Sequence record: MK327931.1
Length of the DNA stretch: 13,384 nucleotides
Reading direction: 5' to 3' (one strand)
The position numbers were made by a program, and so were the translations under genes. Within the stretch, counting starts at the first letter, position 1. The number at the start of each line of letters is the position of its first letter. The notes under the pieces were generated by a model. That model searched no databases, was not told where the DNA came from, and saw only the letters and a list, made by a program, of their open reading frames with translations. Shown here piece after piece: positions 1,683 through 13,241 of this stretch.

Positions 1683-1977
1683 TGATTCTCCCTGATGTAC
1701 CTTGTATTAGCTTATCATACATATCGAGCATCACTTTTTGAATACTAATTAGTACTGGCATCGTGCAAATATCAATGTCGTATACTAAGCTGTACTGGAA
1801 TAATTCATCTTCCTGCATTTGTACTAAATTAGGTAAAGGATAATTGTCTGCCTCTTCATCCTGGTACTTGAAATGCATAACACCATCCTTTTTGTACAAA
1901 AGAATGTCAATATCACCTAACTCATCAGCATAACCAAAAATACATATACTCGATGTTTTTGCTATATTAAATTTCAT
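1657..1977 (-). CDS. Family B paralog B3
   Basis: Motif EDELFQYSLVYDI. Start moved to the ATG at 1977 (ATGA overlap, GAGGTGGAG upstream). Confidence 0.85.
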   Translation of the reverse strand: MKFNIAKTSSICIFGYADELGDIDILLYKKDGVMHFKYQDEEADNYPLPNLVQMQEDELFQYSLVYDIDICTMPVLISIQKVMLDMYDKLIQGTSGRIIEIDIQDN

Positions 1978-2219
1978 CTCCACCTCTCTCCGTCAGCACA
2001 AGAGTACTGGTACGTTGTCGTTAGGGTAGGGACCATGTTTGTAATGGGCATATTATTAACAATAACGGTAACAGGCATAAGAATCGTCTCTACTCTACTC
2101 TGTCCTGTCCTTGTACAATTCATCTTCTGCATTTCATCTGAATCCATGAAATACAATACAAATGGTGCAATCCCAAGAACAATACACAAGACGATAAGGA
2201 AATTTAAAAAATTTAACAT
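1974..2219 (-). CDS. Small predicted membrane-anchored protein (81 aa)
   Basis: N-terminal hydrophobic stretch (FLIVLCIVLGIAPFVLYF) followed by a Thr/Val/Pro-rich segment bracketed by two Cys. Has its own promoter. Confidence 0.8.
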   Translation of the reverse strand: MLNFLNFLIVLCIVLGIAPFVLYFMDSDEMQKMNCTRTGQSRVETILMPVTVIVNNMPITNMVPTLTTTYQYSCADGERWR

Positions 2220-2248
2220 AATTTTTACCCTATGATTAACGTTAGTGT

Positions 2249-2277
2249 ACTATATCAGTAATGAAAAGTACTGTCAA
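2249..2277 (-). promoter_or_regulatory. Sigma70-type promoter
   Basis: TTGACA-17 nt-TATAGT with a TG extended -10, immediately after the stop of 2279..2683. AGTACT abuts the -35. Confidence 0.8.
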
Positions 2278-2278
2278 G

Positions 2279-2683
2279 CTAGTATTGCACTGTTCTAATG
2301 AAAGTACCTTTACTCATGGATTTAAGCTTATGAACCTCTTCCTGCATACCCTTAATTAACCCTAAAGGTATAGGTAAATCATGTACTAAGCTGTACTGAA
2401 AGTATTCTTCTTCAGATAAAGTACTAACATCTGGAACGCCAATTTTAGTTATATAATCTTGATGTGTTGACCAATAAATTATATCTTCAGTACTATTGTA
2501 CTCCCCATATACTGAACAATATTGATGAATATCTTTCCTGTACCCTTGAGCAATAAAGAACTTATCTAATGCATTACCAGCATTAATAGAATTTACTTCG
2601 ATTGTCACAGTACTTGAGCTTGTATAACTCTTAATATTATCAGTACTCTTAATACTCAACGATGTGTTCTTCATAATCACCAT
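2279..2683 (-). CDS. Family B paralog B2
   Basis: Motif STLSEEEYFQYSLVHDL; AGGAG upstream. Confidence 0.85.
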   Translation of the reverse strand: MVIMKNTSLSIKSTDNIKSYTSSSTVTIEVNSINAGNALDKFFIAQGYRKDIHQYCSVYGEYNSTEDIIYWSTHQDYITKIGVPDVSTLSEEEYFQYSLVHDLPIPLGLIKGMQEEVHKLKSMSKGTFIRTVQY

Positions 2684-2993
2684 TAGGCTCCTGTTTAGAT
2701 TCTTTCATTAGTACTATCATCTTATGTACTAATGGCATAGGGAACTCTAAATCCCATACTAATGATTCCTGGAAGTATTCCTCTGGTGATAAAGTACTTA
2801 AATCTTTAATATCAACGTGCTTGTATATTTTATTTTCGTAATTAACAAATGATATATATAAATCACTAACATAAGAATCATAGGTAATTGTGAATGGCTT
2901 ACCCTTGTAATCCATTACATCTCTACATAGACTACTTTTGATATATGTATGTTCAAATGATTTATATACCTTGAGTTGTATATTAGTTTTCAT
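2649..2993 (-). CDS. Family B paralog B1
   Basis: Motif STLSPEEYFQESLVWDL. Confidence 0.85.
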   Translation of the reverse strand: MKTNIQLKVYKSFEHTYIKSSLCRDVMDYKGKPFTITYDSYVSDLYISFVNYENKIYKHVDIKDLSTLSPEEYFQESLVWDLEFPMPLVHKMIVLMKESKQEPNGDYEEHIVEY

Positions 2994-3225
2994 ATTTCTC
3001 TTTATTAGCTTGTTTGGTTTTATAGTGAATTAAATCTATTAATGTAATCAAGTACAACGTCAAATAGTACTCTTGTTGATCTGTACCTAATGATACAAAG
3101 AACTTGTGCTCATAGATTAAAACCTGTTTCTCTTCAAATGGACATTTAATCCTCTGTATAGGCTTAAGTAAATGATAGTACTTATTAAATCTATGATACA
3201 TTTCTAGTTCTGTCAGTACTTTCAT
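2983..3225 (-). CDS. Family A paralog A29
   Basis: SLGTDQQEYYLTLYLITL. Start reassigned to MKVLT (3225) by family consensus; the track start is 3258. Confidence 0.85.
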   Translation of the reverse strand: MKVLTELEMYHRFNKYYHLLKPIQRIKCPFEEKQVLIYEHKFFVSLGTDQQEYYLTLYLITLIDLIHYKTKQANKEKYEN

Positions 3226-3226
3226 A

Positions 3227-3448
3227 TTAAACACATACTCCATTAGCTGTAGCATCACGTAAAGCTGTCAAATACTTCTGTACGGCTTGCTCTTGCTTAT
3301 TTGTACCTAAAAGTATATACATCCATAATTCACTGTAATGTACATCTTGTGTATAAGGGTCATTGTAACTTTTTGATAATATAGCATCAAATTCAGATGC
3401 ATGAACCCTTGTGAACTTAAGAATATCTTGTTGTGTTATGATTCTCAT
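3227..3448 (-). CDS. Family A paralog A28
   Basis: LLGTNKQEQAVQKYLTAL; ATGA overlap. Confidence 0.9.
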   Translation of the reverse strand: MRIITQQDILKFTRVHASEFDAILSKSYNDPYTQDVHYSELWMYILLGTNKQEQAVQKYLTALRDATANGVCV

Positions 3449-3660
3449 ATCTTTTCCTGTACAATCTGTATAAGAATACCTATGTGTGAATTAACAGTTC
3501 TCTCTTGATGCTGTGTTCCTAAGAGTGTCAGTACTATCATATCTGAACGCAAAAGATTTTTTTCAAGTTCACTTATATCAGTTCTTGAATCAAGTGCCAT
3601 ATATTTGTGATTATTCTTCCTGAATAGTGCCAAGTACTCTTGGTTTGATATTATCTTCAT
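3445..3660 (-). CDS. Family A paralog A27
   Basis: LLGTQHQERTVNSHIGIL; ATGA overlap. Confidence 0.9.
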   Translation of the reverse strand: MKIISNQEYLALFRKNNHKYMALDSRTDISELEKNLLRSDMIVLTLLGTQHQERTVNSHIGILIQIVQEKI

Positions 3661-3872
3661 AGTTTACTTTTAATTTCCATTAAAAGTGCTCTAATATGCT
3701 CATTGACAAATCGCTCTTGGGAATCTGTGTCTAGGGTGAGAAGCATTCTTAAATCGGAACCTCTGATGGTATATTCTAAATCATTCTTTGATTCTCGCAT
3801 AAGTTTCTGAAAGGATGAGAAGTGTAATCCCATGAGTTCAATGTATTCTGCTGTTCCTAGTGGTTTTGGCAT
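3657..3872 (-). CDS. Family A paralog A26 (G>D variant)
   Basis: TLDTDSQERFVNEHIRAL; ends IKSKL. Confidence 0.9.
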   Translation of the reverse strand: MPKPLGTAEYIELMGLHFSSFQKLMRESKNDLEYTIRGSDLRMLLTLDTDSQERFVNEHIRALLMEIKSKL

Positions 3873-4078
3873 TTTAGTTCAATAGCTCGTTTAAGTGTAT
3901 TAATATAATCTTTAATGTCGTGTTCTTGATAGTTCGTTCCAAGGGTAGCTAGAACATAGACTTCATTTCTCTTAATAATTTTATCCATATCTGGTATATC
4001 TGATGTGTTAATGACGAAGAGCTTCAAAAACAGTCCATTTATGATTGTTAGGTATTCTACATCGGTAATGATTTTCAT
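3857..4078 (-). CDS. Family A paralog A25
   Basis: TLGTNYQEHDIKDYINTL. Start moved to MKIIT (4078, ATGA overlap). Confidence 0.9.
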   Translation of the reverse strand: MKIITDVEYLTIINGLFLKLFVINTSDIPDMDKIIKRNEVYVLATLGTNYQEHDIKDYINTLKRAIELKCQNH

Positions 4079-4296
4079 TTGCATTTGCATTTTCTCAGTA
4101 CTGATTCTTTAAGTTCATTGATGTAGCACTCTACATATTCTTCTTGTAGGTTTGTTCCGATATGTAACAGTACTCTTAAATCTGCTCTCAGTACTTCTTT
4201 GTCATCTTCATCTATATCAGACAGTGTTATGTTTAAGAATTTACTTGAACTCTCTATAAGTAATATTACTGAATCACCTTTGCTTAAAATTTTCAT
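4075..4296 (-). CDS. Family A paralog A24
   Basis: HIGTNLQEEYVECYINEL. Confidence 0.9.
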   Translation of the reverse strand: MKILSKGDSVILLIESSSKFLNITLSDIDEDDKEVLRADLRVLLHIGTNLQEEYVECYINELKESVLRKCKCK

Positions 4297-4504
4297 AATC
4301 TCTTTTTGCTTTCCTCGCCAAAAGGTACATATACGATTCTTCGTATTGTGCTTGGTAGTTTGTGTTTAAGAGTCGAAACAACTTCTGTTCTGCTAGAACT
4401 AGTTGCTTATCTTCATAACAACGGTAGCGTATCAACTTTTTGTATTCGATGTTGATTACATCCATTACTATAAGCCCATGTTCATCATCTGTCAAGTGTT
4501 TCAT
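4274..4504 (-). CDS. Family A paralog A23 (G>N variant)
   Basis: LLNTNYQAQYEESYMYLL; starts MKHLTDDE like A9. Confidence 0.9.
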   Translation of the reverse strand: MKHLTDDEHGLIVMDVINIEYKKLIRYRCYEDKQLVLAEQKLFRLLNTNYQAQYEESYMYLLARKAKRDYENFKQR

Positions 4505-4743
4505 GCATTTTTTCTTTTTCTTATATGTTTAGTTAAAAGGTATATTAGTTTTCTGATGTATTCTTCTTGATAGTTTGTTCCTAAGAGTGCAAGAAGTTTT
4601 GCTTCAACTAAAGCTAGTTGTCGTTCTTCGAATGTGTGTTCCAGTATGTACTTGGGGTTTGATTTTTTAGCGTAAGCACTATTAGTCTTCATTACAATCT
4701 TATGATATTCATTAGCTGTTAGGATTTTTAAATACTTGATCAT
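4501..4743 (-). CDS. Family A paralog A22
   Basis: LLGTNYQEEYIRKLIYLL. Confidence 0.9.
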   Translation of the reverse strand: MIKYLKILTANEYHKIVMKTNSAYAKKSNPKYILEHTFEERQLALVEAKLLALLGTNYQEEYIRKLIYLLTKHIRKRKNA

Positions 4744-4963
4744 GTATCTTTTCCTTTATAGAGAATTTAAGATATCGAAGCATACTTTCAATGTAATACT
4801 CTTGTCTGTCAGTGCCAAGAAAGTACATGAGTTGAATGTATAAAACTTCTGCACTCCTTTCCGCTGGAGACTTGTTTGTGTCGTTTGGAAGTTGATTTGT
4901 ATGTTTTCTTGATTTAATTAGTCGTTCTTTTAACTCATCGTCTGTTAAGTATTTCATTTTCAT
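4712..4963 (-). CDS. Family A paralog A21
   Basis: FLGTDRQEYYIESMLRYL; close to A20 (PAERSAEVL shared). Confidence 0.9.
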   Translation of the reverse strand: MKMKYLTDDELKERLIKSRKHTNQLPNDTNKSPAERSAEVLYIQLMYFLGTDRQEYYIESMLRYLKFSIKEKIHDQVFKNPNS

Positions 4964-5189
4964 TTACTTTTTCCTTAATAGTGATTTTAAGATATCTAAT
5001 CATACGTGCAACATATTCCTCTTGTCTATCAGTTCCCAGAAGATATGGTAGTGATTGGAATAATACTTCTGCACTCCTTTCTGCTGGGGTTTGGTTTAGG
5101 TCAATTGGACGTTTATTGGTATATCTCTTGGCACGAACTAATCTCTCGACGTATTCATTATAGGTTAAGTATATCATTTCATTTTGCAT
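4935..5189 (-). CDS. Family A paralog A20
   Basis: LLGTDRQEEYVARMIRYL. Confidence 0.9.
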   Translation of the reverse strand: MQNEMIYLTYNEYVERLVRAKRYTNKRPIDLNQTPAERSAEVLFQSLPYLLGTDRQEEYVARMIRYLKITIKEKVNENEILNRR

Positions 5190-5409
5190 TTACTTTTTCC
5201 TTAATACTCATTATAAGATGTTCAATCATATTTTGAACCATAAATTCTTGTTTATCAGTTCCAAGAACGTATGGTAGCTTCTGAAACAATACATTTGCAG
5301 ATACTTCAGATATTGATTGATTTGGAACGAACTTAAGAGTAATGTTTTTGGTTTTTAACATCTTCTCTTGAAATTCTTCATTCGTTAAGTATATCATTTC
5401 ATTTTGCAT
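5179..5409 (-). CDS. Family A paralog A19
   Basis: VLGTDKQEFMVQNMIEHL; N-terminus MQNEMIYLT identical to A20. Confidence 0.9.
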   Translation of the reverse strand: MQNEMIYLTNEEFQEKMLKTKNITLKFVPNQSISEVSANVLFQKLPYVLGTDKQEFMVQNMIEHLIMSIKEKVNAK

Positions 5410-5625
5410 TTACATTCTCTCATATATATTTTGGGTTAAAAGGTCAATCCAGATTTCCACATATCGTTGTTGGTGTTGCGTCCCTAACAGTACACCCAAC
5501 TTAGCTTCACACTCTAATAACAATCTGGTTTTGTATGGTAGACTTTGGAATCCTATAGTAGCATCTAATTTGGTAATTGCATAGTTGATTCGGATGAATC
5601 TTTCTTGCAATGTGATGTTGTTCAT
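5410..5625 (-). CDS. Family A paralog A18
   Basis: LLGTQHQQRYVEIWIDLL. Confidence 0.9.
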   Translation of the reverse strand: MNNITLQERFIRINYAITKLDATIGFQSLPYKTRLLLECEAKLGVLLGTQHQQRYVEIWIDLLTQNIYERM

Positions 5626-5885
5626 TTCTTAGTACACCTCAGTGGTTGGGTCATTTGATAAAAGTACAGCTTACCTTTGATTTCCAGTAGTAACTCCGCG
5701 ATTAAGCGATTTACTTCTGTATCTTGATAGTTTGTTCCTAAGAATACACCCATCTTTAACTCACGCATCATAATCATTTTCTTACTGTGTTGAATTTCTG
5801 GGTTGTGATAGATTGTATTACGTTTGTGCGTAATTTTTGTCATACGCTCGGTATATTCATCTTTACTTAAATTGATCATTTGCAT
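5622..5885 (-). CDS. Family A paralog A17
   Basis: FLGTNYQDTEVNRLIAEL. Start moved to MQMINLSK (5885; GAGGT 8 nt upstream). Confidence 0.9.
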   Translation of the reverse strand: MQMINLSKDEYTERMTKITHKRNTIYHNPEIQHSKKMIMMRELKMGVFLGTNYQDTEVNRLIAELLLEIKGKLYFYQMTQPLRCTKK

Positions 5886-5914
5886 GTTCATCAACCTCAC
5901 ATTTATTTTCAATA

Positions 5915-6154
5915 CTATTCTTTAGTTTGTAGATATAGTTTTCTTCCAATGTATCTCTTAAGTGCGATTATGTATTCATCTACATAATACTCCTGATAGT
6001 TTGTTCCTATGAATGCACCCACCTTTAACTCAAGTTTCATAATCATCTTATTTCCGTGTTTAATGACTTCTCCGTGATGGATTTCATTAAGTCCAGGTGC
6101 AATTTTCACCAGGCGTTCTTTATATTTTGCTTGAGATAATTTAATCATTTTCAT
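5915..6154 (-). CDS. Family A paralog A16
   Basis: FIGTNYQEYYVDEYIIAL. Start moved to MKMIKLS (6154; AAGGGT upstream). Confidence 0.9.
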   Translation of the reverse strand: MKMIKLSQAKYKERLVKIAPGLNEIHHGEVIKHGNKMIMKLELKVGAFIGTNYQEYYVDEYIIALKRYIGRKLYLQTKE

Positions 6155-6155
6155 G

Positions 6156-6386
6156 TTAATTACCCTTACATTTATTTTCAATACTATTCATGAGTTCTAT
6201 AAGATAGTTTTCTACCTTACCTTCCTGATAGTTAGTCCCTAGGAAGTTGCACAACACGGCTTCTATGATTTTGATTTTCCTGATATCAGGCTTCAATCTT
6301 TTGTTATTGAATATTTGAATCCTTATATCTCTGGATGCATTTAAACGTTTTTGATATTCATGGTAAGTTAAATGAATCATTTTCAT
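6156..6386 (-). CDS. Family A paralog A15
   Basis: FLGTNYQEGKVENYLIEL. Confidence 0.9.
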   Translation of the reverse strand: MKMIHLTYHEYQKRLNASRDIRIQIFNNKRLKPDIRKIKIIEAVLCNFLGTNYQEGKVENYLIELMNSIENKCKGN

Positions 6387-6601
6387 TTACGTTTAACCTC
6401 TCGCTGGAGGGCATCAATTAACATCAGTACAGCATTCTCTTGATAGTTTGTTCCTAAGACTGAAAGCATCTTTATCTCATTTACTAAAATCAACTTCTTT
6501 GAGGGTTCAATAATGTGACTATCATAAACGGCCTTACGTGCTGGATAAGTTTTCGCCAGTATAACATAAAATTCGTCTTTACTTAAATTAATCATTTGCA
6601 T
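6383..6601 (-). CDS. Family A paralog A14
   Basis: VLGTNYQENAVLMLIDAL. Confidence 0.9.
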   Translation of the reverse strand: MQMINLSKDEFYVILAKTYPARKAVYDSHIIEPSKKLILVNEIKMLSVLGTNYQENAVLMLIDALQREVKRK

Positions 6602-6810
6602 TTACTTTTAACCTCTTTCTGTAGAGCGTCAATCCATAGATCTACATACATTTGTTGATAGTTTGTGCCTAAGAGTGCACCTACATAGAGTTCAGTTACT
6701 AGTGCGTGCTTAAGGTTAGCTTGGATGCTCTTATCGCTTGATATCATTCTCCTTCTGCTTCCACATGTTTTCAGGAGTCTGATGTATTCAAAGCCTTGTA
6801 AATTTCTCAT
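6592..6810 (-). CDS. Family A paralog A13
   Basis: LLGTNYQQMYVDLWIDAL. Confidence 0.9.
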   Translation of the reverse strand: MRNLQGFEYIRLLKTCGSRRRMISSDKSIQANLKHALVTELYVGALLGTNYQQMYVDLWIDALQKEVKSKCK

Positions 6811-7022
6811 ATTTTGGATACCACCTTGTTACGTAAGGAACTTAATAATACGTCAGTGTAGATGTTTTGATAGTTTGTCCCTACGAATACACCCAACTTC
6901 ATTTCAGCTATTATAACACATTTGTCCTCTTGTGCAATAGATTTGTTTAACACAATACTATACACTTTTGATTTGATAGTTTGTAACCTCCAATGATACT
7001 GATACTCATTAAGGATTATCAT
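6807..7022 (-). CDS. Family A paralog A12
   Basis: FVGTNYQNIYTDVLLSSL. Confidence 0.9.
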   Translation of the reverse strand: MIILNEYQYHWRLQTIKSKVYSIVLNKSIAQEDKCVIIAEMKLGVFVGTNYQNIYTDVLLSSLRNKVVSKI

Positions 7023-7883: not shown

Positions 7884-8107
7884 TAGTTCTTTTCCTTTCT
7901 TTCTATTTGTTTCATAAGAACATCGATATACTCACCCGCAAACCTATTCTGATACTGCGTCCCCATGAATTCCAACATCCATACTTCAGCAACCTTTTCT
8001 TCAATTTCAGTCCATTGTAAGTACATCATAGTGAAGTAAATGGTGTTCTCTTTTTTTCTGGCACTCTTAGCACGGGCCTCGTATTCAAAGTTATTAATGA
8101 TGTTCAT
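7883..8107 (-). CDS. Family A paralog A7
   Basis: FMGTQYQNRFAGEYIDVL. Start moved to MNIIN (8107). Confidence 0.9.
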   Translation of the reverse strand: MNIINNFEYEARAKSARKKENTIYFTMMYLQWTEIEEKVAEVWMLEFMGTQYQNRFAGEYIDVLMKQIERKEKN

Positions 8108-8321
8108 TACATTTGTCCATAATGTAATTCTTGAGTGCAACTATGTGTGCAATAACATACTCTTCCTGGAAGTTCGTCCCCAGTACAGCCAACATGCGTA
8201 CATCGGTGGTGTTTATCTTGTGTTCCAATCGAGTTAAACCTTTTATTTGTAAAAGGGTATCGTATTTGTTTAATGCATCAATGATAATTCTCATCTTCTC
8301 AATATTACTTAAATGTTTCAT
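8094..8321 (-). CDS. Family A paralog A6
   Basis: VLGTNFQEEYVIAHIVAL. Confidence 0.9.
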   Translation of the reverse strand: MKHLSNIEKMRIIIDALNKYDTLLQIKGLTRLEHKINTTDVRMLAVLGTNFQEEYVIAHIVALKNYIMDKCNEHH

Positions 8322-8530
8322 AGTTTACTCTTAATGTAGTTCTGAAGTTCAATTAAGTATTTCCCTACATAATACTCCTGAAAGTCTGTATCCAAAAATG
8401 CACCCAAAAGTAAATCCTTCTCCATTGCCCTTGATAAGTTAAGGTCTGCATTTGAAAGGTATATAAGTAATATTTCAGTCTGGACAGAATTAAAACGTTT
8501 CTTATATTCTTCAGGTGTTAATATAATCAT
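8318..8530 (-). CDS. Family A paralog A5 (G>D variant)
   Basis: FLDTDFQEYYVGKYLIEL. Confidence 0.9.
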   Translation of the reverse strand: MIILTPEEYKKRFNSVQTEILLIYLSNADLNLSRAMEKDLLLGAFLDTDFQEYYVGKYLIELQNYIKSKL

Positions 8531-8742
8531 AATTTGCTCCTGATGTATTTCTCAAGAGATGACAAATACTTTTCCTCATAATACTCCTGATAGTCTGTTC
8601 CCAAGAATGCACCCATAAGTATTTCATTTTCCAATACCTCGGCTAAGTTTAAATCAGACGTCTCTTCGTATATTATGAGGATTTCAAGTTGTCTGGCAGC
8701 GATGCGTTCAGTATATTGATATGAGTTTTCTATAATAATCAT
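8527..8742 (-). CDS. Family A paralog A4
   Basis: FLGTDYQEYYEEKYLSSL; close to A5. Confidence 0.9.
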   Translation of the reverse strand: MIIIENSYQYTERIAARQLEILIIYEETSDLNLAEVLENEILMGAFLGTDYQEYYEEKYLSSLEKYIRSKL

Positions 8743-8948
8743 ATTTTACTCTTAATATCTTCTATTAAAAATCGAATCCATTCTTCAACATAATCTTCCT
8801 GATGGTTTGTGTTCAGTACAGCCAACATGCGGATCTCTGCTCTTGCAACTTCAATTTCAGTTTTAGGCAGGTCTTTGCTGATATCCACCATTAAGTCCAT
8901 GTATTTCAAGATAAGACCGTATGATTGGGTTCGTGTTATAGTTTTCAT
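8739..8948 (-). CDS. Family A paralog A3 (G>N variant)
   Basis: VLNTNHQEDYVEEWIRFL. Confidence 0.9.
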   Translation of the reverse strand: MKTITRTQSYGLILKYMDLMVDISKDLPKTEIEVARAEIRMLAVLNTNHQEDYVEEWIRFLIEDIKSKI

Positions 8949-9145
8949 TGTTTCCTCGTGGACAATATTTTATTTTTCAATGTATCCATATATTGCCACA
9001 CCCATCTACCCTGATAGTTTGTTCCCAATGTAATCAAAAGGTATAACTCCATTCGTTCTACGTGTGTGTCTGTGTTGTAAATCTTTACGTAGTTTTTACG
9101 TAACAGTGATTGATATTCTTCTTTATTTAAAATACGCATTTTCAT
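8945..9145 (-). CDS. Family A paralog A2
   Basis: TLGTNYQGRWVWQYMDTL. Confidence 0.9.
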   Translation of the reverse strand: MKMRILNKEEYQSLLRKNYVKIYNTDTHVERMELYLLITLGTNYQGRWVWQYMDTLKNKILSTRKQ

Positions 9146-9339
9146 AGTTTACTCGTTATATCTTCAATTAAATACCAAATCCAATCGTTGACATACCTTT
9201 CCTGAAAGTTAGTTCCAATGAATAGTGCCATAATTAATTCACGCTTATAGGCAATACCACGGTCATGGGACTTATACATTATCATAGCCATGTTATTGAT
9301 AAGTCTTTCGTGGTGCTGTTCTTTAGTTAAAATACGCAT
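9142..9339 (-). CDS. Family A paralog A1 (first gene of the array)
   Basis: FIGTNFQERYVNDWIWYL. Start moved to MRILTKEQ (9339; GGGAG upstream; the track start abuts the -10 box). Confidence 0.9.
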   Translation of the reverse strand: MRILTKEQHHERLINNMAMIMYKSHDRGIAYKRELIMALFIGTNFQERYVNDWIWYLIEDITSKL

Positions 9340-9369
9340 AGGGACTCCCTTAAAATTAATATCAATCAT

Positions 9370-9397
9370 ATTTTATACGATTCATATAAAAAGTCAA
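9370..9397 (-). promoter_or_regulatory. Predicted promoter of the family A operon
   Basis: TTGACT-16 nt-TAAAAT, 30 nt upstream of the A1 start. Confidence 0.65.
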
Positions 9398-9494
9398 TAA
9401 CATTTTATTCGTAATACCCCTTTATCGAAGTCGCTAAGGTTACCCGCCCTTTAGCCCCCTACGCATTTTGCCATAGTCCAATCCCTTTTATTTC

Positions 9495-9560
9495 AAAAAA
9501 GTCAAGGGATTACCTATGCATTTTTTTAACGCATAATTTTAAAAACGCCTTGACTTTTTT
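9495..9560. terminator. Long inverted repeat, possible bidirectional terminator
   Basis: AAAAAAGTCAAGG (9495-9507) and CCTTGACTTTTTT (9548-9560) form a perfect 13 bp inverted repeat ending in a T-tract on both strands, enclosing a second 8 bp stem (9515-9535). Confidence 0.5.
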
Positions 9561-9588
9561 CTGAATCAGTACTAGATCCCTTTACGCA

Positions 9589-9798
9589 TTAATCCTTCGT
9601 TACGCTAACGATTATCTGTGTATCCCCGTAGTCCTGCCATACTTCCACGCCATCGGTCGCCCTGGTTAGTCGTGCTGTCATCTGCTTAATGGTCTTAGGC
9701 TTTAGTGGAACCTGTTGCAGTACTGTACGCATAGCATCATTGACGTTATCATGTACGCCTGCAATAGTACCTAGAACGCTGTATACTGTATAGAACAT
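9589..9798 (-). CDS. Hypothetical protein (69 aa)
   Basis: ORF track; AGGAGG 8 nt upstream. Confidence 0.85.
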   Translation of the reverse strand: MFYTVYSVLGTIAGVHDNVNDAMRTVLQQVPLKPKTIKQMTARLTRATDGVEVWQDYGDTQIIVSVTKD

Positions 9799-9822
9799 AT
9801 GTATGCCCTCCTGATATAGTTA

Positions 9823-9842
9823 AGGCCGCTACAAGGCGGCCT
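9823..9842 (-). promoter_or_regulatory. Leader/intergenic hairpin
   Basis: AGGCCGC-6 nt-GCGGCCT, a perfect 7 bp stem just upstream of the RBS. Confidence 0.6.
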
Positions 9843-9866
9843 ATGATGTTTGGTGATGTGTAACGC

Positions 9867-10268
9867 TTACAGTCCTAAGATAGTGCGTGCTTCGTTACGT
9901 TCCGTACACAGCTGCATGATGTGAGCAAGTAAGTCCTTGCTAATGTATCCGGTGTTCATAGCTTCACGAATAGATACATCATACGCACCGAACCCCGTGC
10001 GAACGATACGCACATCATTCAGGTTAGTATTATAGATACCGCCGAGATCAACGGCTTCGAATACTACATCAACAGAATATTCATTGTTGCCATCGTGGAA
10101 GTTTTCCAGTGCAATAGTATTGGATACCGCCCAACGTTTGCAGTTTCCAATGATGCGGCACTGTTCCGGTTGGATAGTACCATTACTTACAGCGTACTCC
10201 AGTGCATCTTTACCAAAAGTCCGAGCCAGTACTAAAACGTCAGCGAAGGAATTGATTGAGAAGGTCAT
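9867..10268 (-). CDS. Hypothetical protein (133 aa)
   Basis: Start moved to MTFSINS (10268; AAGGAG upstream). The track extension runs through the leader hairpin. Confidence 0.85.
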   Translation of the reverse strand: MTFSINSFADVLVLARTFGKDALEYAVSNGTIQPEQCRIIGNCKRWAVSNTIALENFHDGNNEYSVDVVFEAVDLGGIYNTNLNDVRIVRTGFGAYDVSIREAMNTGYISKDLLAHIMQLCTERNEARTILGL

Positions 10269-10288
10269 GATAAAACTCCTTAATTTAG

Positions 10289-10350
10289 GAGGGAGAACCA
10301 TTTCCCCCTCTCTATGTAAAACATTATACTTGATTCTAAGTACTATGCAA
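10289..10350 (-). promoter_or_regulatory. Cassette module: promoter plus leader hairpin
   Basis: TTGCAT-16-TATAAT (10350-10323), then hairpin GAGGGGGAA-ATGG-TTCTCCCTC (10310-10289). Confidence 0.85.
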
Positions 10351-10357
10351 GTACTTT

Positions 10358-10690
10358 TTACATTTTAATACCTGGATTCAGGTAGCGGTGAGATCCATAT
10401 TCTGGATCGGTTTCGGTCCAGTACTGTAAATCGATAGTACCTTTCGCGTTAATCTTGTCTACCAGCTTATTCATCTTAGTGTATACTACGTCAGCATCGA
10501 TGCGTTTAAAGCCAGTAGCTTTAGTGAAGTAGTAGTGATTTGCTTCACTATCATTAAGGATATACCGAGCACCGTTTGCAGTCTGTGCGATAATGATTGA
10601 GTATTCTACTTCCCGATCCAGACCGTCGATGAATACAGATGAAACATTGGTACGGATGAAAGCTTTAACGATAGCGATTGAAGTACTCAT
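10358..10690 (-). CDS. Hypothetical protein (110 aa)
   Basis: ORF track; AGGAG RBS; C-terminal IDLQYWTETDPEYGS motif. Confidence 0.85.
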   Translation of the reverse strand: MSTSIAIVKAFIRTNVSSVFIDGLDREVEYSIIIAQTANGARYILNDSEANHYYFTKATGFKRIDADVVYTKMNKLVDKINAKGTIDLQYWTETDPEYGSHRYLNPGIKM

Positions 10691-10710
10691 TTTGAATCTC
10701 CTAACTTTGT

Positions 10711-10772
10711 GGGCCGTCGCACCATTGCCGCCCTACGAGATACATTATTGCAGTACTGATATACTTTGTCAA
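10711..10772 (-). promoter_or_regulatory. Cassette module, variant
   Basis: TTGACA-17-AATAAT; the upstream half is identical to the 12723 and 13217 copies; imperfect hairpin GGGCGGCA-ATGG-TGCGACGGCCC. Confidence 0.7.
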
Positions 10773-10885
10773 TACTTTTTTTATTAATAGTTTTCACCCC
10801 ACCAGCAGATAGTTACTCACCGTTATTAACTATATATTTTAGATACACTCCTGCACCCAGTGGGCTAGTTTTTGTCTATGCGTAT

Positions 10886-10914
10886 ATAATAGCAAAGGGA
10901 CTGACCGGAGTCAA
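10886..10914 (-). promoter_or_regulatory. Orphan sigma70-type promoter
   Basis: TTGACT-17-TATTAT with a TG extended -10, overlapping a terminator-like hairpin. Confidence 0.6.
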
Positions 10915-10925
10915 TCCCTTTTTTT
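10894..10925. terminator. Intrinsic terminator-like hairpin
   Basis: Minus strand: GGGAUUGAC-UCCG-GUCAGUCCC (UNCG-type tetraloop) followed by UUU; plus strand followed by T7. Lies 12 nt after the stop of 10937..11137. Confidence 0.7.
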
Positions 10926-10936
10926 ATTCTTTTTTG

Positions 10937-11137
10937 TTAGATGATTCTCCAATCTTCTACGATCATGGTAAGATAACGGACCATCGATTCAAGTGATTCG
11001 AATTCCCGATAGTCTGCCGCTCCACCAGCGGTACAAGTACAGCCGATTAAACCATTTTGTAATTCCTTAATCTGTACATCGATAAGGTTGGCTTTAGCTT
11101 CTTTCAGTACTTCAACCAGGGCGATAGCGATAGACAT
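10937..11137 (-). CDS. Hypothetical protein (66 aa)
   Basis: ORF track; GGAG RBS; has its own promoter module. Confidence 0.85.
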   Translation of the reverse strand: MSIAIALVEVLKEAKANLIDVQIKELQNGLIGCTCTAGGAADYREFESLESMVRYLTMIVEDWRII

Positions 11138-11160
11138 AATGTTTTACTCCAAACTATTGA

Positions 11161-11220
11161 CGGGAGAACTATTCCCCCGCTCTATGTAAAACATTATACA
11201 TTACTGGTTAGTACTGTCAA
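11161..11220 (-). promoter_or_regulatory. Cassette module: promoter plus leader hairpin
   Basis: TTGACA-16-TATAAT (11220-11193); hairpin CGGGGGAA-TAG-TTCTCCCG. 11161-11199 is identical to 12136-12174. Confidence 0.9.
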
Positions 11221-11226
11221 ATAGTT

Positions 11227-11484
11227 TTATGAAATATCTTCGATGTAGTCGGCCCATTTCATTTTTTCAGTACTGTCAATGGCTACCGGATTATTTGGAT
11301 CAAACCATTCACCATTCCCGCAATACATACCCACGGCAACGGTTTTATATCCATCCTGTGCAGTACTCCACGACATAGCACGATAGATATGGCCTTTAAC
11401 TGGTTGCAATACTGGTAATGTTTTATGGTCTTCTACGTAGGCCATAGCTTGAGGATTTACCCGATATTGTGTGAACTGTTCCAT
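11227..11484 (-). CDS. Hypothetical protein (85 aa)
   Basis: ORF track; AAGGGG RBS. Confidence 0.85.
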   Translation of the reverse strand: MEQFTQYRVNPQAMAYVEDHKTLPVLQPVKGHIYRAMSWSTAQDGYKTVAVGMYCGNGEWFDPNNPVAIDSTEKMKWADYIEDIS

Positions 11485-11512
11485 TATGTTTCCCCTTGTA
11501 GTTAGTAAAGTT

Positions 11513-11541
11513 ATTACATCAGTACTATCAAGCTATGTCAA
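11513..11541 (-). promoter_or_regulatory. Promoter without a leader hairpin
   Basis: TTGACA-17-TGTAAT; AGTACT both in the spacer and upstream of the -35. Confidence 0.65.
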
Positions 11542-11560
11542 TAGTACTGAAATAAAACTT

Positions 11561-11785
11561 TTAGATTAGATTATTGATGCCGTTGATGGTAGACTCGCTT
11601 TCTTCTTTCTCCCATTGGCGGTAGTACTTCCATGCTTCATGATATGTGGCGATTAGTTCATCTTTTTGATCCTGAGTACATGCCAGTACTGAATCACGGT
11701 GAGCGGTTTTATAGATAGAATCGAATGATTTCTTCTCTTCTGCCAGGTTAGCTACTTCCCGCATCAGTTCATCAAAGTTAGCCAT
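11561..11785 (-). CDS. Hypothetical helical protein (74 aa)
   Basis: ORF track; AAGGAG RBS. Confidence 0.85.
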   Translation of the reverse strand: MANFDELMREVANLAEEKKSFDSIYKTAHRDSVLACTQDQKDELIATYHEAWKYYRQWEKEESESTINGINNLI

Positions 11786-11803
11786 TTTATTACTCCTTTT
11801 AGT

Positions 11804-11860
11804 GGGGGAGGATATCTCCCCCTATGCAAAACATTATACTTTGTTTTAGTTATTATGCAA
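11804..11860 (-). promoter_or_regulatory. Cassette module: promoter plus leader hairpin
   Basis: TTGCAT-16-TATAAT (11860-11833); hairpin GGGGGAG-ATATC-CTCCCCC. Confidence 0.85.
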
Positions 11861-12116
11861 GTACTTTTTTCATATAAAGATTATATTCTACACCGCCGTA
11901 ACCTTCTACGATGATATGTTTTGCGTTATCACGTTTGCACATAGTGAAACCGTTGTTGATGTGTTCTGCATTTTCCAGGGCGACATCACCGATAGCGGCA
12001 CATACGGCACTAATAACAGTATTCCGCAAAGTACTGGTATCATTAGCGGTCATAGTAGTTTGCAGTACTACGTTGTCGTATACGTGTGCATTGATAGTGA
12101 TTTCGATAGTGTTCAT
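11853..12116 (-). CDS. Hypothetical protein (87 aa)
   Basis: ORF track; AGGAG RBS; its last codons overlap the next promoter. Confidence 0.85.
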   Translation of the reverse strand: MNTIEITINAHVYDNVVLQTTMTANDTSTLRNTVISAVCAAIGDVALENAEHINNGFTMCKRDNAKHIIVEGYGGVEYNLYMKKVLA

Positions 12117-12134
12117 GGTGTATCTCCTGGACTG

Positions 12135-12195
12135 GCGGGAGAACTATTCCCCCGCTCTATGTAAAACATTATACGTTAATCTAACTACAATGCAA
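12135..12195 (-). promoter_or_regulatory. Cassette module: promoter plus leader hairpin
   Basis: TTGCAT-16-TATAAT (12195-12168); hairpin GCGGGGGAA-TAG-TTCTCCCGC. Confidence 0.9.
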
Positions 12196-12202
12196 GTACT
12201 TT

Positions 12203-12394
12203 TTAAATTTTATTTCCGATATAGTCCGGTCTATTCTTTTCGGTCATACGCTTTGCTAATGTTTGCATATGGCTTATTGCGTTTAATGTGTCTTCCTCCA
12301 GGGATGAATCAACATAATCAGGATCATTCTTCACCTTGCAATGATTATGATAGCGTAGTACTGCCAGTACTTTTTTAACTTCTTCTACTGTCAT
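12203..12394 (-). CDS. Hypothetical protein (63 aa)
   Basis: ORF track; ATGA-coupled to 12391..12663. Confidence 0.8.
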   Translation of the reverse strand: MTVEEVKKVLAVLRYHNHCKVKNDPDYVDSSLEEDTLNAISHMQTLAKRMTEKNRPDYIGNKI

Positions 12395-12663
12395 AATAAG
12401 TACCCCACTTCGTTAGCTTTCAGGTTAGTATCAATCATCAGTGGATTTTTGTAGTTCACAAAACGATTAGTTTTCTCGATAGCGAATCCCATATAATCCA
12501 GCTTACTAACAGTACATTCATTCTTAAAAACTTCTTTCGCTGCATCGATGGCTGATTGCATGGATAACCGACCATCTAAATTAATGTTTCCAAATGATCC
12601 ACCAGCAGAAGTAGGATTACCGTTCATATCTTTAATGATCATAGTAGCGGAGTAGCTGGACAT
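12391..12663 (-). CDS. Hypothetical protein (90 aa)
   Basis: ORF track; AAGGA RBS; has its own promoter module. Confidence 0.85.
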   Translation of the reverse strand: MSSYSATMIIKDMNGNPTSAGGSFGNINLDGRLSMQSAIDAAKEVFKNECTVSKLDYMGFAIEKTNRFVNYKNPLMIDTNLKANEVGYLL

Positions 12664-12685
12664 AATTTTGTTTCCTTTTAGTATC

Positions 12686-12744
12686 GGGGAGAACTATTCT
12701 CCCCTTGATGTAAACTATTATACAGTACTGATATACTTTGTCAA
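12686..12744 (-). repeat. 59 bp direct repeat, copy 1 (promoter plus hairpin module)
   Basis: Identical to 13180-13238; TTGACA-16-TATAAT followed by GGGGAGAA-TAG-TTCTCCCC. Confidence 0.95.
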
Positions 12745-12750
12745 ATACTT

Positions 12751-13158
12751 TTATTCGCCCATATAGATTAAGTTATCATCGCCTACATAGGGATCGCAAA
12801 CGTTGATTTCTTCGCAGTACTTCGTGAATACATCGCCATAGTGACCTAAACCACGATCCCAAAAACCAGTTCCGTGACCTTCGCGGGTAAGGAACAGATC
12901 ATGACCAGCTTGCTCATAACCGTAATCAATAAACATACCGCGAACTACTTCCAGATCATTACCGTGTTTCTCAATGAAGCGAGAACATGCAATCACCGCC
13001 GCTTGACGTGCTTCATCAGATAACTCATAATCTTCCAGGTAATCGCCGTTATCATTATGTACAGTACTGAATTGCATAGCTTCAATGTAAGCTACAACCA
13101 TTGCAGCATGATTTTTATCGTTAGTGATGTTCCGAGCGAGATTAGTAGTAGTAGACAT
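12751..13158 (-). CDS. Acidic hypothetical protein (135 aa) with a GHDxxLTRxGHGxGFWDR motif
   Basis: ORF track; AAGGA RBS; has its own promoter module. Confidence 0.9.
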   Translation of the reverse strand: MSTTTNLARNITNDKNHAAMVVAYIEAMQFSTVHNDNGDYLEDYELSDEARQAAVIACSRFIEKHGNDLEVVRGMFIDYGYEQAGHDLFLTREGHGTGFWDRGLGHYGDVFTKYCEEINVCDPYVGDDNLIYMGE

Positions 13159-13179
13159 GATTTTATTCCTTATTGTATT

Positions 13180-13238
13180 GGGGAGAACTATTCTCCCCTT
13201 GATGTAAACTATTATACAGTACTGATATACTTTGTCAA
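13180..13238 (-). repeat. 59 bp direct repeat, copy 2 (promoter plus hairpin module)
   Basis: Identical to 12686-12744. Confidence 0.95.
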
Positions 13239-13241
13239 TAC

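Follow-up and report, generated by a model that had tools for sequence, protein, structure and literature searches.

Hyper-abundance of the AGTACT palindrome in RaK2-like jumbo phages, a putative selected DNA signal

The analyzed stretch of DNA (the window; 13,384 nucleotides of MK327931.1) is 100% identical to Escherichia phage vB_EcoM_G17 (Asteriusvirus, a RaK2-like jumbo phage) and is composed of two blocks that are rich in the six-letter palindrome AGTACT and two islands that are free of it. The rightmost block lies in the 20.7-kb terminal repeat of the phage, as established by the identity of 2500 of 2500 bases to G17 1-2500 and by the end of the repeat at record position 20668. The features of the window, with the gene layout based on the G17 annotation, are as follows:

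1-1494, minus strand: the window end of island A, which as a whole comprises about 7.3-8.3 kb and about 20 unrelated genes and continues beyond the window (L001 10061-17207); no AGTACT, but the one-off variant AGTACA on the coding strand (TGTACT on the window plus strand) at 78, 258, 483, 573, 904, 978 and 1437, the next copy, at 1631, lying in the intergenic gap just upstream of the island (1494-1657).
1751-4195, no strand assigned: the first AGTACT-rich block, 17 sites (7.0 per kb) in small early genes transcribed on the minus strand, between the two islands.
2249-2277, minus strand: promoter-like TTGACAGTACT-N-TATAGT outside the terminal repeat, with AGTACT at 2267-2272.
4196-9436, minus strand: island B, 5.2 kb with no AGTACT, comprising 22 of the 28 tandem paralogous genes of about 70 aa that span 2983-9339; about half of them carry one TGTACT on the coding strand, around a conserved peptide motif of the family, and a promoter-like element TTGACT...TATAAA (9370-9397) without AGTACT sits at its upstream end.
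9437-13384, no strand assigned: the second AGTACT-rich block, 26 sites (6.6 per kb), the inner part of the right-hand 20,668-bp direct terminal repeat of G17 (window base 9437 is base 1 of the G17 record), which carries 132 sites in total (6.4 per kb).
10323-10355, minus strand: early promoter with two sites 11 bp apart (10339 and 10350) that bracket the -35 hexamer TTGCAT.
10745-10775, minus strand: promoter-like element of the 'TTGACAAAGTATATCAGTACTG' cassette type with a degenerate -10 hexamer and CAGTACTG at 10751-10758 (AGTACT at 10752), not recovered by the pattern search for promoters.
11193-11220, minus strand: early promoter TTGACAGTACT, with AGTACT (11210-11215) overlapping the downstream edge of the -35 hexamer.
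11513-11548, minus strand: early promoter with two sites 22 bp apart, one (11543-11548) just upstream of the -35 hexamer TTGACA and one (11521-11526) in the spacer next to the -10 hexamer.
11833-11865, minus strand: early promoter of the same type as that at 12168-12200, with AGTACT (11860-11865) overlapping the upstream edge of the -35 hexamer TTGCAT.
12168-12200, minus strand: early promoter AAAAAGTACTTGCAT-N16-TATAAT, with AGTACT (12195-12200) overlapping the upstream edge of the -35 hexamer.
12717-12744, minus strand: sigma-70-like early promoter of the same cassette type as that at 13211-13238, with CAGTACTG (12723-12730) abutting the -10 hexamer and a GGGGAGAATAGTTCTCCCC hairpin following in the leader.
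13211-13238, minus strand: sigma-70-like early promoter TTGACA-N16-TATAAT, with CAGTACTG (13217-13224) abutting the -10 hexamer.

The extreme over-representation of AGTACT reported in the initial annotation was confirmed. The window contains exactly 43 sites (the first at 1751 and the last at 13218-13223), compared to 3.63 +/- 1.87 (largest 9) in 200 dinucleotide-preserving shuffles and 4.4 expected from base composition, and AGTACT is the single most frequent hexamer of the window. The first 4.4 kb holds 49 GTAC vs. 12.4 expected, also as annotated. The statement that the sites occur in or beside the -35/spacer region of TTGACA/TTGCAT promoters, but not in TTGACT promoters, holds as well: seven sigma-70-like promoters in 10323-13238, the one at 2249-2277 and the similar element at 10752 all carry AGTACT in this region, while the TTGACT element at 9370-9397 carries none. 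However, the sites are not spread over 1751-13223, as they are confined to the two blocks and entirely missing from 1-1750 and 4196-9436; the two islands had been overlooked in the initial annotation, which also treated the feature as local.

Indeed, the observed excess is a property of the whole genome and of the RaK2-like clade. A related coliphage, EC22.5-2, has 913 sites vs. 119 expected, and a RaK2-like Klebsiella phage (OU509535.1) has 945 vs. 117, AGTACT being the most frequent hexamer in both genomes. The excess also holds near polB of a Yersinia phage, but not in Pseudomonas phage PAC2 (4 vs. 8.7 expected) or in a sample of E. coli K-12 (12 vs. 13.3 expected), pointing to a phage-determined rather than host-determined feature. 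At the same time, these genomes display a textbook avoidance of other type II restriction sites (PMC6286503), with 23 of 64 hexamer palindromes and every GCGC being absent, whereas AGTACT, which is identical to the ScaI site (AGT^ACT) and contains the RsaI/CviQI site (GTAC), deviates in the opposite direction (about 8-fold enrichment). None of the papers found in our literature search mentions this feature.

We further asked whether the excess could be a nonfunctional by-product of codon and amino acid usage, of mutational or repair bias, or of the purge of other palindromes. Some observations are in line with this possibility: AGT, ACT and GTA are favored codons (34%, 46% and 38% of Ser, Thr and Val, respectively), RaK2 carries Ser and Thr tRNA genes (PMC3622015), and a fourth-order Markov model predicts 746 of the 913 sites, although the latter only restates that AGTAC and GTACT are themselves enriched. 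Nevertheless, the disappearance of the enrichment upon control for codon usage and amino acid content, which had been named beforehand as a refuting outcome, was not observed. In the window, 32 sites lie in complete genes in all three frames (10 AGT-ACT, 7 xAG-TAC-Txx and 15 xxA-GTA-CTx) compared to 13.3 +/- 2.8 (largest 23 of 500) in synonymous-codon shuffles, and the other 11 lie in the 10% of the window that is noncoding. Genome-wide, the 753 sites in genes exceed 219 +/- 12 obtained by shuffles that keep the protein sequence and per-gene codon usage, as well as 132 +/- 11 after codon permutation; all three frames are enriched (379, 140 and 234), and the density is 4.9 per kb in intergenic DNA vs. 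2.4 per kb in genes. The proteins themselves are bent toward the word, with 717 Ser-Thr dipeptides vs. 493 expected, 53% of them (16% expected) being written AGT-ACT. One-mismatch neighbors are not depleted, and a genome-wide mutational drive cannot leave two old islands, conserved between subclades at 55-87% identity, entirely free of the word. Thus, an explanation without function is already largely refuted and appears very unlikely.

More exactly, the over-represented word is C-AGTACT-G (about 60-80-fold over): CAGTACTG occurs 202 times vs. 3.4 expected in the coliphage, and 246 times vs. 3.0 in the Klebsiella phage. Enrichment ratios upstream and (complemented) downstream match position by position to +/-8 in two genera, although about 90% of genes lie on one strand, which points to duplex DNA read by a dimer. 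The same symmetry has no rationale for a single-stranded RNA motif and renders improbable an RNA-level signal, in which AGUACU would be bound or cut in transcripts of either strand by an RNA-binding protein or endoribonuclease, by analogy with T4 RegB cutting GGAG. The RNA hypothesis is in line with the grading of density by temporal class (about 7 per kb in early genes vs. 1.5-2 per kb in the late region) and with the apparent coincidence of island A with one transcription unit bounded by intergenic gaps, but not with the highest enrichment being in noncoding DNA, with sites in the -35 and spacer DNA upstream of the likely transcription start sites, or with the island variants differing at opposite ends of the RNA word (AGUACA in island A vs. 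UGUACU in island B).

An AGTACT core is also present in the site GTGAGTACTCAC bound by the host nucleoid-occlusion factor SlmA (PMC3020112), a dimeric protein of the TetR family, showing that such a core can be a specific protein site in this host group. SlmA occurs in the enterobacterial hosts of these phages (slmA is annotated in E. coli K-12), and phage sites acting as SlmA decoys would block host cell division. This reading is the least likely of those considered, as there are 0 full SlmA sites in 350 kb, half-sites are below expectation (9 and 10 vs. about 19), and the flanks are incompatible: C at -1 and G at +1 in the phage, where SlmA needs a purine at -1 and GT further out (PMC3020112), G at -1 combined with C at +1 being the rarest flank pair (4 of 913). 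No SlmA homologue was detected in the phage by tblastn. SlmA sites in the host chromosome number only a few dozen, against about 900 per 350 kb here.

A Chi-like self-protection signal, recognized by a translocating helicase-nuclease of host or phage origin and attenuating degradation, as a palindrome from either end of the linear genome, is likewise doubtful. In its favor, density is highest in the terminal repeat, where ends are exposed (6.4 per kb vs. about 2 per kb in the late region), the host carries the word only at chance level, the oriented island variants recall polar signals, and genuine Chi (GCTGGTGG) is strongly enriched (28 copies vs. about 2 expected) and concentrated in the repeat, which would show that end protection is under selection in these phages, although the higher G + C content of the repeat alone may raise Chi counts there. 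Chi (RecBCD), KOPS (FtsK) and the uptake sequences DUS and USS are also genome-wide "self" words kept by selection on density rather than on individual sites, and carried only at chance level by the foreign (or host) genome. However, those words are asymmetric and orientation-biased, and known Chi-type signals are read on one strand, whereas the dyad symmetry of AGTACT flanks fits duplex recognition rather than a single-strand channel, and only the island variants are oriented. E. coli RecBCD does not recognize this word, and no candidate enzyme is known.

The sites are conserved above background, yet subject to turnover. In G17 vs. 121Q, 49 of 54 sites are kept, compared to about 77% for all hexamers, while between genera at 65% amino acid identity only 17-34% of sites share a position but density is kept. 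This behavior resembles that of HIP1, the highly iterated palindrome GCGATCGC of cyanobacteria (PMC4390886, PMC5861425, PMC13756078), which is also tens of times over-represented (as is the octamer here), scattered through coding DNA in all frames and through intergenic DNA, maintained across a whole clade with sites conserved above background, and of unresolved function. The phage word is different and is carried by a virus whose genome otherwise purges palindromes; its density gradient toward the terminal repeat, fixed registers on early promoters and islands with an oriented one-off variant have not, to our knowledge, been described for HIP1. By analogy with the role proposed for HIP1 and its orphan methyltransferases, AGTACT could be, or contain, the target of a phage methyltransferase, its abundance being selected for, or driven by, a methylation-dependent process. 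The phages do encode a Dam-family adenine methyltransferase (PF05869) and a C5-cytosine methyltransferase (PF00145) (PMC11895373, PMC5259590). Nevertheless, we consider this possibility unlikely. RaK2 DNA is reported to carry methylated CpG by bisulfite sequencing and to behave as Dam- and CpG-methylated in digests (PMC3622015); as AGTACT has no CpG, a modification target is not supported for the cytosine enzyme, while it remains possible for the Dam-family enzyme. No enzyme with AGTACT or GTAC specificity was identified, the deamination neighbors AGTATT and AATACT are not depleted (ratios 1.19 and 0.95), which argues against a drive of the very-short-patch-repair type, and fEgEco12 DNA is cut as predicted in silico by ten enzymes (ScaI and RsaI not among them), so there is no bulk modification (PMC13070987).

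Both AGTACT-free islands are conserved within Asteriusvirus, island B being present in EC22.5-2 and in the divergent Asteriusvirus TH47. Island A holds 0 AGTACT but 42-43 AGTACA (about 5 per kb), all on the coding strand and with the same preference for C at -1 and G at +1; this is conserved between subclades down to 55% protein identity, with turnover that never passes through AGTACT, as if the reader of the word discriminates a single base. Such half-mutated, co-oriented sites could be explained if the word were a cleavage or nicking site of a phage-encoded endonuclease, with programmed nicks or breaks seeding recombination-dependent replication, clamp loading for late transcription or T5-like strand interruptions. 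A dyad-symmetric 6-8 bp word is typical of type II restriction-like enzymes, and a site with one good half-site is the classic way to turn a double-strand cutter into a strand-specific nickase; AGTACA sites would then be nicked on one strand only, which would explain why island A keeps oriented variants at the same density and excludes the palindrome. The phage encodes PD-(D/E)xK-fold (TnsA-like N, PDDEXK_1), HNH and T5orf172/GIY-YIG-like proteins, and its genome architecture is T5-like, with a long terminal repeat full of early genes. This alternative is also unlikely, since about 900 double-strand-cleavable sites in the phage's own genome would be suicidal without protection and no protecting methylase is evident. 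Restriction fragments of fEgEco12 virion DNA match the in silico prediction (PMC13070987), so virion DNA is not broken at these sites (although nicks would not show in such gels), and there is no direct evidence of nicks.

A comparison with promoters revealed that 15 of 22 sigma-70-like promoters in the G17 repeat carry the site, starting at -27 (6 promoters) or -7 (10 promoters) relative to the start of the -10 hexamer, and that intergenic sites peak 20-80 bp upstream of start codons. A dyad-symmetric site in fixed register over the -35 hexamer or next to the -10 hexamer of repeated early promoter cassettes recalls operator arrays of phage regulators and promoter-stem-loop cassettes of T4-type early regions. 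However, about 80% of sites are intragenic, far from promoters and spread over the whole 350 kb, so promoter control cannot be the main role, and no phage repressor is known to have about 900 operators. The promoter registers may partly reflect duplication of promoter cassettes, and a promoter-intrinsic "CTG" before TATAAT, rather than independent selection. Spacing between sites shows only a mild excess at 20-23 bp (24 vs. 11.7) and no clear helical periodicity, providing no sign of cooperative arrays.

Overall, the core interpretation of the initial annotation, a positively selected genome mark at the DNA level rather than a codon or amino acid by-product, is well supported, but its interpretation is only partly supported as a whole; it listed many possible functions without choosing one, and our evidence does not settle which is right. 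The dyad symmetry and fixed promoter registers favor a dimeric DNA-binding protein, which we put forward tentatively as the most likely reading. Our analysis demonstrates the excess, its independence from coding, its dyad symmetry, its conservation and turnover across the clade, its promoter registers and the existence of conserved islands that exclude it, all from sequence and without experimental support, whereas the existence of a protein reading the word, its dimeric and phage-encoded nature, and the consequences of binding are inferred. No cognate protein was found: Pfam scans of 435 small ORFs of the relative genome revealed no classical HTH or ribbon-helix-helix regulator, and all ten terminal-repeat proteins of the window are of unknown function. 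Moreover, a strictly oriented, half-mutated site in island A is not what a simple homodimer model predicts.

In this view, the 8-bp palindrome C-AGTACT-G, with weak dyad-symmetric A/T flanks out to about +/-8 bp and recurring every 150-400 bp, is a positively selected word in the duplex DNA of the RaK2-like jumbo phages (Asteriusvirus, Alcyoneusvirus, Eneladusvirus), most likely an operator-like binding site for a sequence-specific homodimeric protein, probably encoded by the phage and not yet identified. This protein would decorate phage DNA far more densely than host DNA (about 11-fold for the hexamer, about 27-fold in the terminal repeat, and more for the octamer), making the word a "self" or organizing mark. 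In the terminal repeat, where the site overlaps the upstream edge of the -35 hexamer or abuts the -10 hexamer of strong sigma-70 early promoters, the same protein would be placed to switch off or modulate early transcription.

The window is 100% identical to Escherichia phage vB_EcoM_G17 (MK327931.1, positions 340714-354097) and to phage Sharanji, both of which are Asteriusvirus, that is, RaK2-like jumbo myoviruses of about 350 kb. All genes of the window are small, lie on the minus strand and have unknown function. Base 1 of the G17 record equals window position 9437, and the first 20,668 bases of the record repeat at its end, so that window 9437-13384 is the inner part of the right-hand direct terminal repeat; a terminal repeat of 20,993 bp was shown experimentally for the relative fEgEco12 (PMC13070987). 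The megablast search of the window also matched six records labelled as Campylobacter phage (host Campylobacter jejuni), which may be mislabelled or contaminant assemblies. The following features of the window are referred to in the analysis:

1-1494: the window end of island A, an AGTACT-free region that extends a further 6 kb to the left.
1494-1657, minus strand: the intergenic gap upstream of island A.
1751-4195: first AGTACT block, 17 sites (7.0 per kb).
2249-2277: a promoter carrying the site.
2983-9339, minus strand: 28 tandem paralogous genes of about 52-87 aa.
4196-9436: island B, AGTACT-free, comprising 22 of the 28 paralogous genes.
9370-9397: a TTGACT element without the site.
9436/9437: the inner boundary of the 20,668-bp direct terminal repeat of G17.
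9437-13384: second AGTACT block, 26 sites (6.6 per kb).
9495-9510: an element of the kind read as a 'TTGACT promoter'.
10300-10350, 11170-11220, 12140-12195, 12690-12744 and 13185-13238, minus strand: repeated early promoter cassettes.
10752: an element related to the promoters, carrying the site.
10799, 11022 and 12599: CCACCAGC, the Chi signal.

The observation made in the initial annotation, an extreme over-representation of AGTACT, proved to be correct. The count of 43 sites is exact, compared with 3.63 +/- 1.87 (largest 9) in 200 dinucleotide-preserving shuffles and 4.4 expected from composition, and AGTACT is the most frequent hexamer of the window. The first 4.4 kb holds 49 GTAC against 12.4 expected. 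The sites fall in the two blocks listed, and none were found in 1-1750 or 4196-9436. Of the sites in the window, 32 lie in complete genes, in all three frames (10, 7 and 15), and 11 lie in the 10% of the window that is non-coding, whereas synonymous shuffling of the window's genes gives 13.3 +/- 2.8 against the 32 observed. The sequence contexts of the 43 sites are all different except for the promoter cassettes, which rules out the possibility that they are part of a longer repeat or of paralogous sequence; paralogy explains only the TGTACT copies of island B.

The excess is not a local feature of the window but is both genome-wide and clade-wide. In the 45.8 kb of G17 around the window there are 194 sites. 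In the unannotated relative EC22.5-2 (350 kb read) there are 913 against 119 expected, and AGTACT is the commonest hexamer of the genome, ahead of all A/T-rich words. A RaK2-like Klebsiella phage genome (OU509535.1) has 945 against 117 expected, where it is again the top hexamer. The polB neighborhoods of Klebsiella phage KP13-7 (Alcyoneusvirus) and Yersinia phage fHe-Yen9-04 (Eneladusvirus) have 40 against 6.5 and 48 against 9.0, respectively, while the more distant Pseudomonas phage PAC2 (Wroclawvirus) has 4 against 8.7, and a 50-kb sample of E. coli K-12 has 12 against 13.3. Thus, the trait belongs to the phage clade and not to one host. A scan of IMG/VR returned only phage 121Q itself.

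The possibility that the word is a by-product of coding was addressed in EC22.5-2, in which 753 of the 913 sites lie in genes, uniformly along gene length. Shuffling synonymous codons within each gene, which keeps protein sequence and codon usage, gives 219 +/- 12, and permuting codons gives 132 +/- 11. Each frame is enriched (379, 140 and 234), and non-coding DNA is twice as dense as coding DNA (160 sites in 32.8 kb). Even the proteins are affected: there are 717 Ser-Thr dipeptides against 493 expected and 483 Thr-Ser, and 53% of them are spelled AGT-ACT against 16% expected. Disappearance of the enrichment after controlling for codon usage and amino-acid content had been named beforehand as an outcome that would refute the initial reading, and it did not occur. 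A codon or dipeptide artefact is therefore rejected, both in the genome and in the window, and an absence of any function is considered very unlikely.

The preferred flanks of the word are C at -1 (44%) and G at +1 (47%). The resulting octamer, CAGTACTG, occurs 202 times against 3.4 expected, and 246 times against 3.0 in the Klebsiella phage, which makes it 60-80-fold over-represented. Enrichment ratios upstream and (complemented) downstream agree position by position out to +/-8 (C x2.8 and x2.6 at 1, T x1.26 and x1.23 at 3, T x1.30 and x1.29 at 4, A x1.2 at 7-8), and the pattern recurs in the Klebsiella phage. As about 90% of genes lie on one strand, such two-fold symmetry points to recognition of duplex DNA by a symmetric reader, and not to an RNA or translational signal; an RNA-level role is accordingly regarded as improbable. 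One-mismatch neighbors are mildly enriched at the outer positions (about 2-fold) and are not depleted anywhere that would indicate a repair drive; in particular, AGTATT and AATACT are not depleted, which argues against a drive resembling VSP repair. Spacing is close to random and slightly over-dispersed, with only a weak excess at 20-23 bp, and cooperative helical arrays were rejected on this basis. Density is about 6-7 per kb in the terminal repeat and neighboring early genes and falls to 1.5-3.5 per kb elsewhere.

Evidence of selection was obtained from comparisons at two evolutionary distances. Between G17 and 121Q, 49 of 54 sites are unchanged, where about 77% of all hexamer windows are. 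Between genera at 65% amino-acid identity, only 7 of 21, 10 of 29 and 5 of 30 sites occupy the same aligned position, yet density is the same. This is selection on number, with some positional conservation, as for HIP1, Chi or uptake sequences.

The word runs against a very strong general trend, as palindrome avoidance in these genomes is extreme. In the same 350 kb of EC22.5-2, 23 of the 64 hexamer palindromes have no copy and six more have 1-7 copies, and GCGC has 0 copies against 292 expected. The Klebsiella phage shows the same pattern (0 GCGC against 224 expected), and the window itself has 0 GCGC and lacks 30 hexamer palindromes. The exceptions among G+C-rich palindromes are GTGCAC (72 copies, 2.3-fold over) and CACGTG (45 copies). 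AGTACT, the ScaI site, is in contrast 7.7-8.1-fold over-represented, which is the opposite of restriction-site avoidance. DNA of fEgEco12 is cut as predicted by ten enzymes, so the DNA is not bulk-modified.

The closest known phenomenon is HIP1 of cyanobacteria (PMC4390886, PMC5861425), with which AGTACT shares its abundance, its presence in coding DNA irrespective of frame and in intergenic DNA, and its clade-wide maintenance with sites conserved above background and turnover at constant density. The word itself differs from GCGATCGC (CGATCG occurs only twice in 350 kb), as do the viral carrier, the background of palindrome purging, the promoter registers and the oriented-variant islands. With regard to cognate methyltransferases, which accompany HIP1, the phages encode a Dam-family adenine methyltransferase and a C5-cytosine methyltransferase, neither of which has been shown to act on AGTACT or GTAC. 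RaK2 DNA is reported to be CpG-methylated (PMC3622015), and the C5 enzyme is linked to this methylation, which cannot involve AGTACT; these bisulfite data led us to reject the cytosine methyltransferase as the reader. No cognate methyltransferase is evident, and a methylation-linked, HIP1-like role appears possible but unlikely.

A host factor was considered as well, because SlmA binds GTGAGTACTCAC. This binding sequence is a 12-bp palindrome, GT(R)AGTACT(Y)AC, with G, T, A and G required at positions 1, 2, 4 and 5 (PMC3020112). We found 0 matches to it in 350 kb, with 9 and 10 half-sites; the phage flank is C at -1, not a purine, and the phage has no SlmA homologue. An SlmA decoy was rejected on these grounds and is regarded as the least likely of the alternatives.

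Polar genome words of the Chi/KOPS type are asymmetric, with a strand or orientation bias relative to replication or to DNA ends, whereas the main word here is a palindrome with symmetric flanks, and only the island variants are oriented. Chi itself (GCTGGTGG), the RecBCD signal, is enriched in EC22.5-2 (including its 30-50 kb region), with 16 + 12 copies against about 1 expected per strand, and nine co-oriented copies lie in the terminal repeat; the Klebsiella phage has 16 + 4. By our reading of Chi polarity, the repeat copies face a RecBCD entering at the left genome end. A Chi-like protection signal is considered an unlikely explanation of AGTACT, somewhat less favored than the methylation-linked one.

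The initial annotation had also placed AGTACT in or beside the -35 hexamer or spacer of the TTGACA/TTGCAT promoters but not of the TTGACT ones, and this claim holds: seven sigma-70-like promoters in the repeat part, the related element at 10752 and the promoter at 2249-2277 carry the site, while the TTGACT element at 9370-9397 does not. In the G17 repeat, 15 of 22 sigma-70-like promoters carry it, in two registers (-27 and -7 relative to the start of the -10 hexamer): AAAAAGTAC-TTGCAx, where the site overlaps the upstream edge of the -35 hexamer (6 promoters), and AGTACTG-TATAAT, where it abuts the -10 hexamer (10 promoters). Intergenic sites genome-wide peak 20-80 bp upstream of start codons. 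A protein bound there would compete with RNA polymerase. A dyad-symmetric site overlapping core promoter elements in fixed register is what would be expected of the operator of a dimeric phage transcription regulator; however, the promoters are repeated cassettes, and the registers are not independent observations, nor are the sites confined to regulatory regions. Each cassette (within the window and in L001 25150-45817, the terminal repeat in the G17 sequence examined) has TTGACA or TTGCAx, N16 and TATAAT, followed by a conserved leader (G/A)TTTACAT(C/A)(A/G)AGGGG, often with a hairpin such as GGGGAGAATAGTTCTCCCC just before the start codon, and resembles the mobile promoter-stem-loop cassettes of T4-type phages. 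The elements read as 'TTGACT promoters' (aaaaagggaTTGACTccggtcagtccctttgcTATTAT), with four copies in the same terminal repeat and at window 9495-9510, contain an inverted repeat and look more like hairpins or terminators than promoters.

The AGTACT-free islands were found in the present analysis, EC22.5-2 having only two large gaps in 350 kb. Island B comprises 22 of 28 tandem paralogous genes of about 70 aa that share a motif like (W/R)ML(L/A)(Y/V)(F/L)xGT. These genes, whose function is unknown, evolve fast between G17 and 121Q (64-88% nucleotide identity, against 94% next door). The TGTACT copies of the island fall around a conserved peptide motif of the family, though not at one fixed nucleotide offset. 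Island B ends exactly at the inner boundary of the terminal repeat, where G+C content rises from about 0.33 to about 0.40-0.44 on entering the repeat.

Island A is more telling. It comprises about 20 unrelated genes bounded by intergenic gaps and has no AGTACT but 42-43 AGTACA, all on the coding strand (0 in the other orientation, TGTACT) and in all three frames, at the same density as AGTACT has next door and with the same C at -1 and G at +1 preference; codon shuffles give 15 +/- 3. Phage TH47, a divergent Asteriusvirus in which one island protein is only 55% identical, has the same two islands. Of 56 and 53 AGTACA sites in the two phages, 39 are shared, and none of the lineage-specific ones is AGTACT in the other phage. 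The islands are therefore not recent imports or accidents. No such islands were found in the Klebsiella phage genome, so they are specific to Asteriusvirus and not a general RaK2-like trait. The protein encoded by the island A gene G17_00569 (L001 12287-12901) is 99-100% identical in about 20 Asteriusviruses that differ by 6-10% elsewhere, but only 54-56% identical in a second subclade, so that either the island module was exchanged recently or it is under unusual constraint. The intergenic gap upstream of island A contains TATATAAATT about 20 nt before the ATG, which resembles the T4-type late promoter TATAAATA and the ATAAATA motif reported for RaK2-like phages (PMC5259590); island A might therefore belong to a different temporal class. 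Whatever reads the word thus tells AGTACT from AGTACA, and in one operon-sized region of Asteriusvirus the oriented half-mutated form is maintained by selection, a situation for which we have no tested explanation. Smaller local patches in EC22.5-2 (21-22 kb, 69-70 kb and 74-77 kb) carry another one-off variant that is locally frequent and strand-specific (AGTACC x4, GGTACT x5 and AGTACA x5 per kb), and dialects may therefore exist on a finer scale than the two big islands.

A search for the protein that would read the word did not identify it. Pfam and PHROGs searches with the ten terminal-repeat proteins of the window gave only families of unknown function, and a Pfam search of ten genes near the Dam gene found nothing relevant. 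Pfam scans of 435 small ORFs of EC22.5-2 found no classical operator-binding domain (no HTH or RHH family), although most early proteins have no family at all, so absence of a hit says little. These scans did reveal several nuclease folds (TnsA-like N, PDDEXK_1, HNH, T5orf172) and a sigma factor. The early region encodes a DksA/TraR-type zinc-finger protein and a protein with a ParE-like toxin domain, and elsewhere there are SIR2, IF3, ClpP, ClpS, an S30AE hibernation-factor-like protein, the TnsA-like nuclease domain and a sigma-70 region 3/4 protein. A role of AGTACT as a nicking or cleavage site is possible but unlikely, about as much so as the methylation-linked one.

Overall, the analysis establishes a dyad-symmetric duplex-DNA word under positive selection across a phage clade, over-represented about 8-fold (60-80-fold as an octamer), densest in the terminal repeat, overlapping early promoters and excluded from two conserved islands. 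That it is the binding site of a dimeric, probably phage-encoded protein that marks or organizes phage DNA and modulates early promoters is our inference, which we favor over each of the alternatives but hold only tentatively; some room is left for explanations that we have not thought of. The interpretation offered in the initial annotation is partly supported: its core, a positively selected genome mark, is well supported. A more speculative, and in our view unlikely, reading is that the RaK2-like jumbo phages carry a genome-wide sequence code with dialects, in which the palindrome CAGTACTG would mark almost all phage DNA, while a conserved operon-sized island would instead carry the same word with one half-site mutated (CAGTACAG), always in the same orientation relative to transcription. 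A machinery that reads both forms, for example a dimeric nuclease or binder that acts on both strands at the palindrome but on one defined strand, or in one direction, at the variant, would then program strand-specific nicking, polar roadblocks or directional replication and transcription in that region, which would be a new kind of cis-acting genome organization for a virus.

Literature searches on AGTACT, CAGTACTG, Asteriusvirus or RaK2 promoters and palindrome over-representation found no prior description, and none of the RaK2, CBB, Sharanji, fEgEco12 or jumbo-phage overview papers that we read mention the feature. Phages are expected to lose short palindromes, and these phages do so to an extreme. 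A palindrome that is at the same time the commonest hexamer of a 350-kb genome, bends protein sequences toward Ser-Thr and has been kept across three genera on different hosts must pay for itself. It is a viral counterpart of the cyanobacterial HIP1 puzzle, but in a much more tractable system, a lytic coliphage that grows on E. coli K-12, with about 900 sites, a sharp consensus and natural negative-control islands. The word would also give a practical sequence signature for recognizing this clade in metagenomes, and its reader could reveal how a non-nucleus-forming jumbo phage tells its DNA from the host's, how it organizes or protects 350 kb of unmodified DNA, or how it shuts off its terminal-repeat early promoters.
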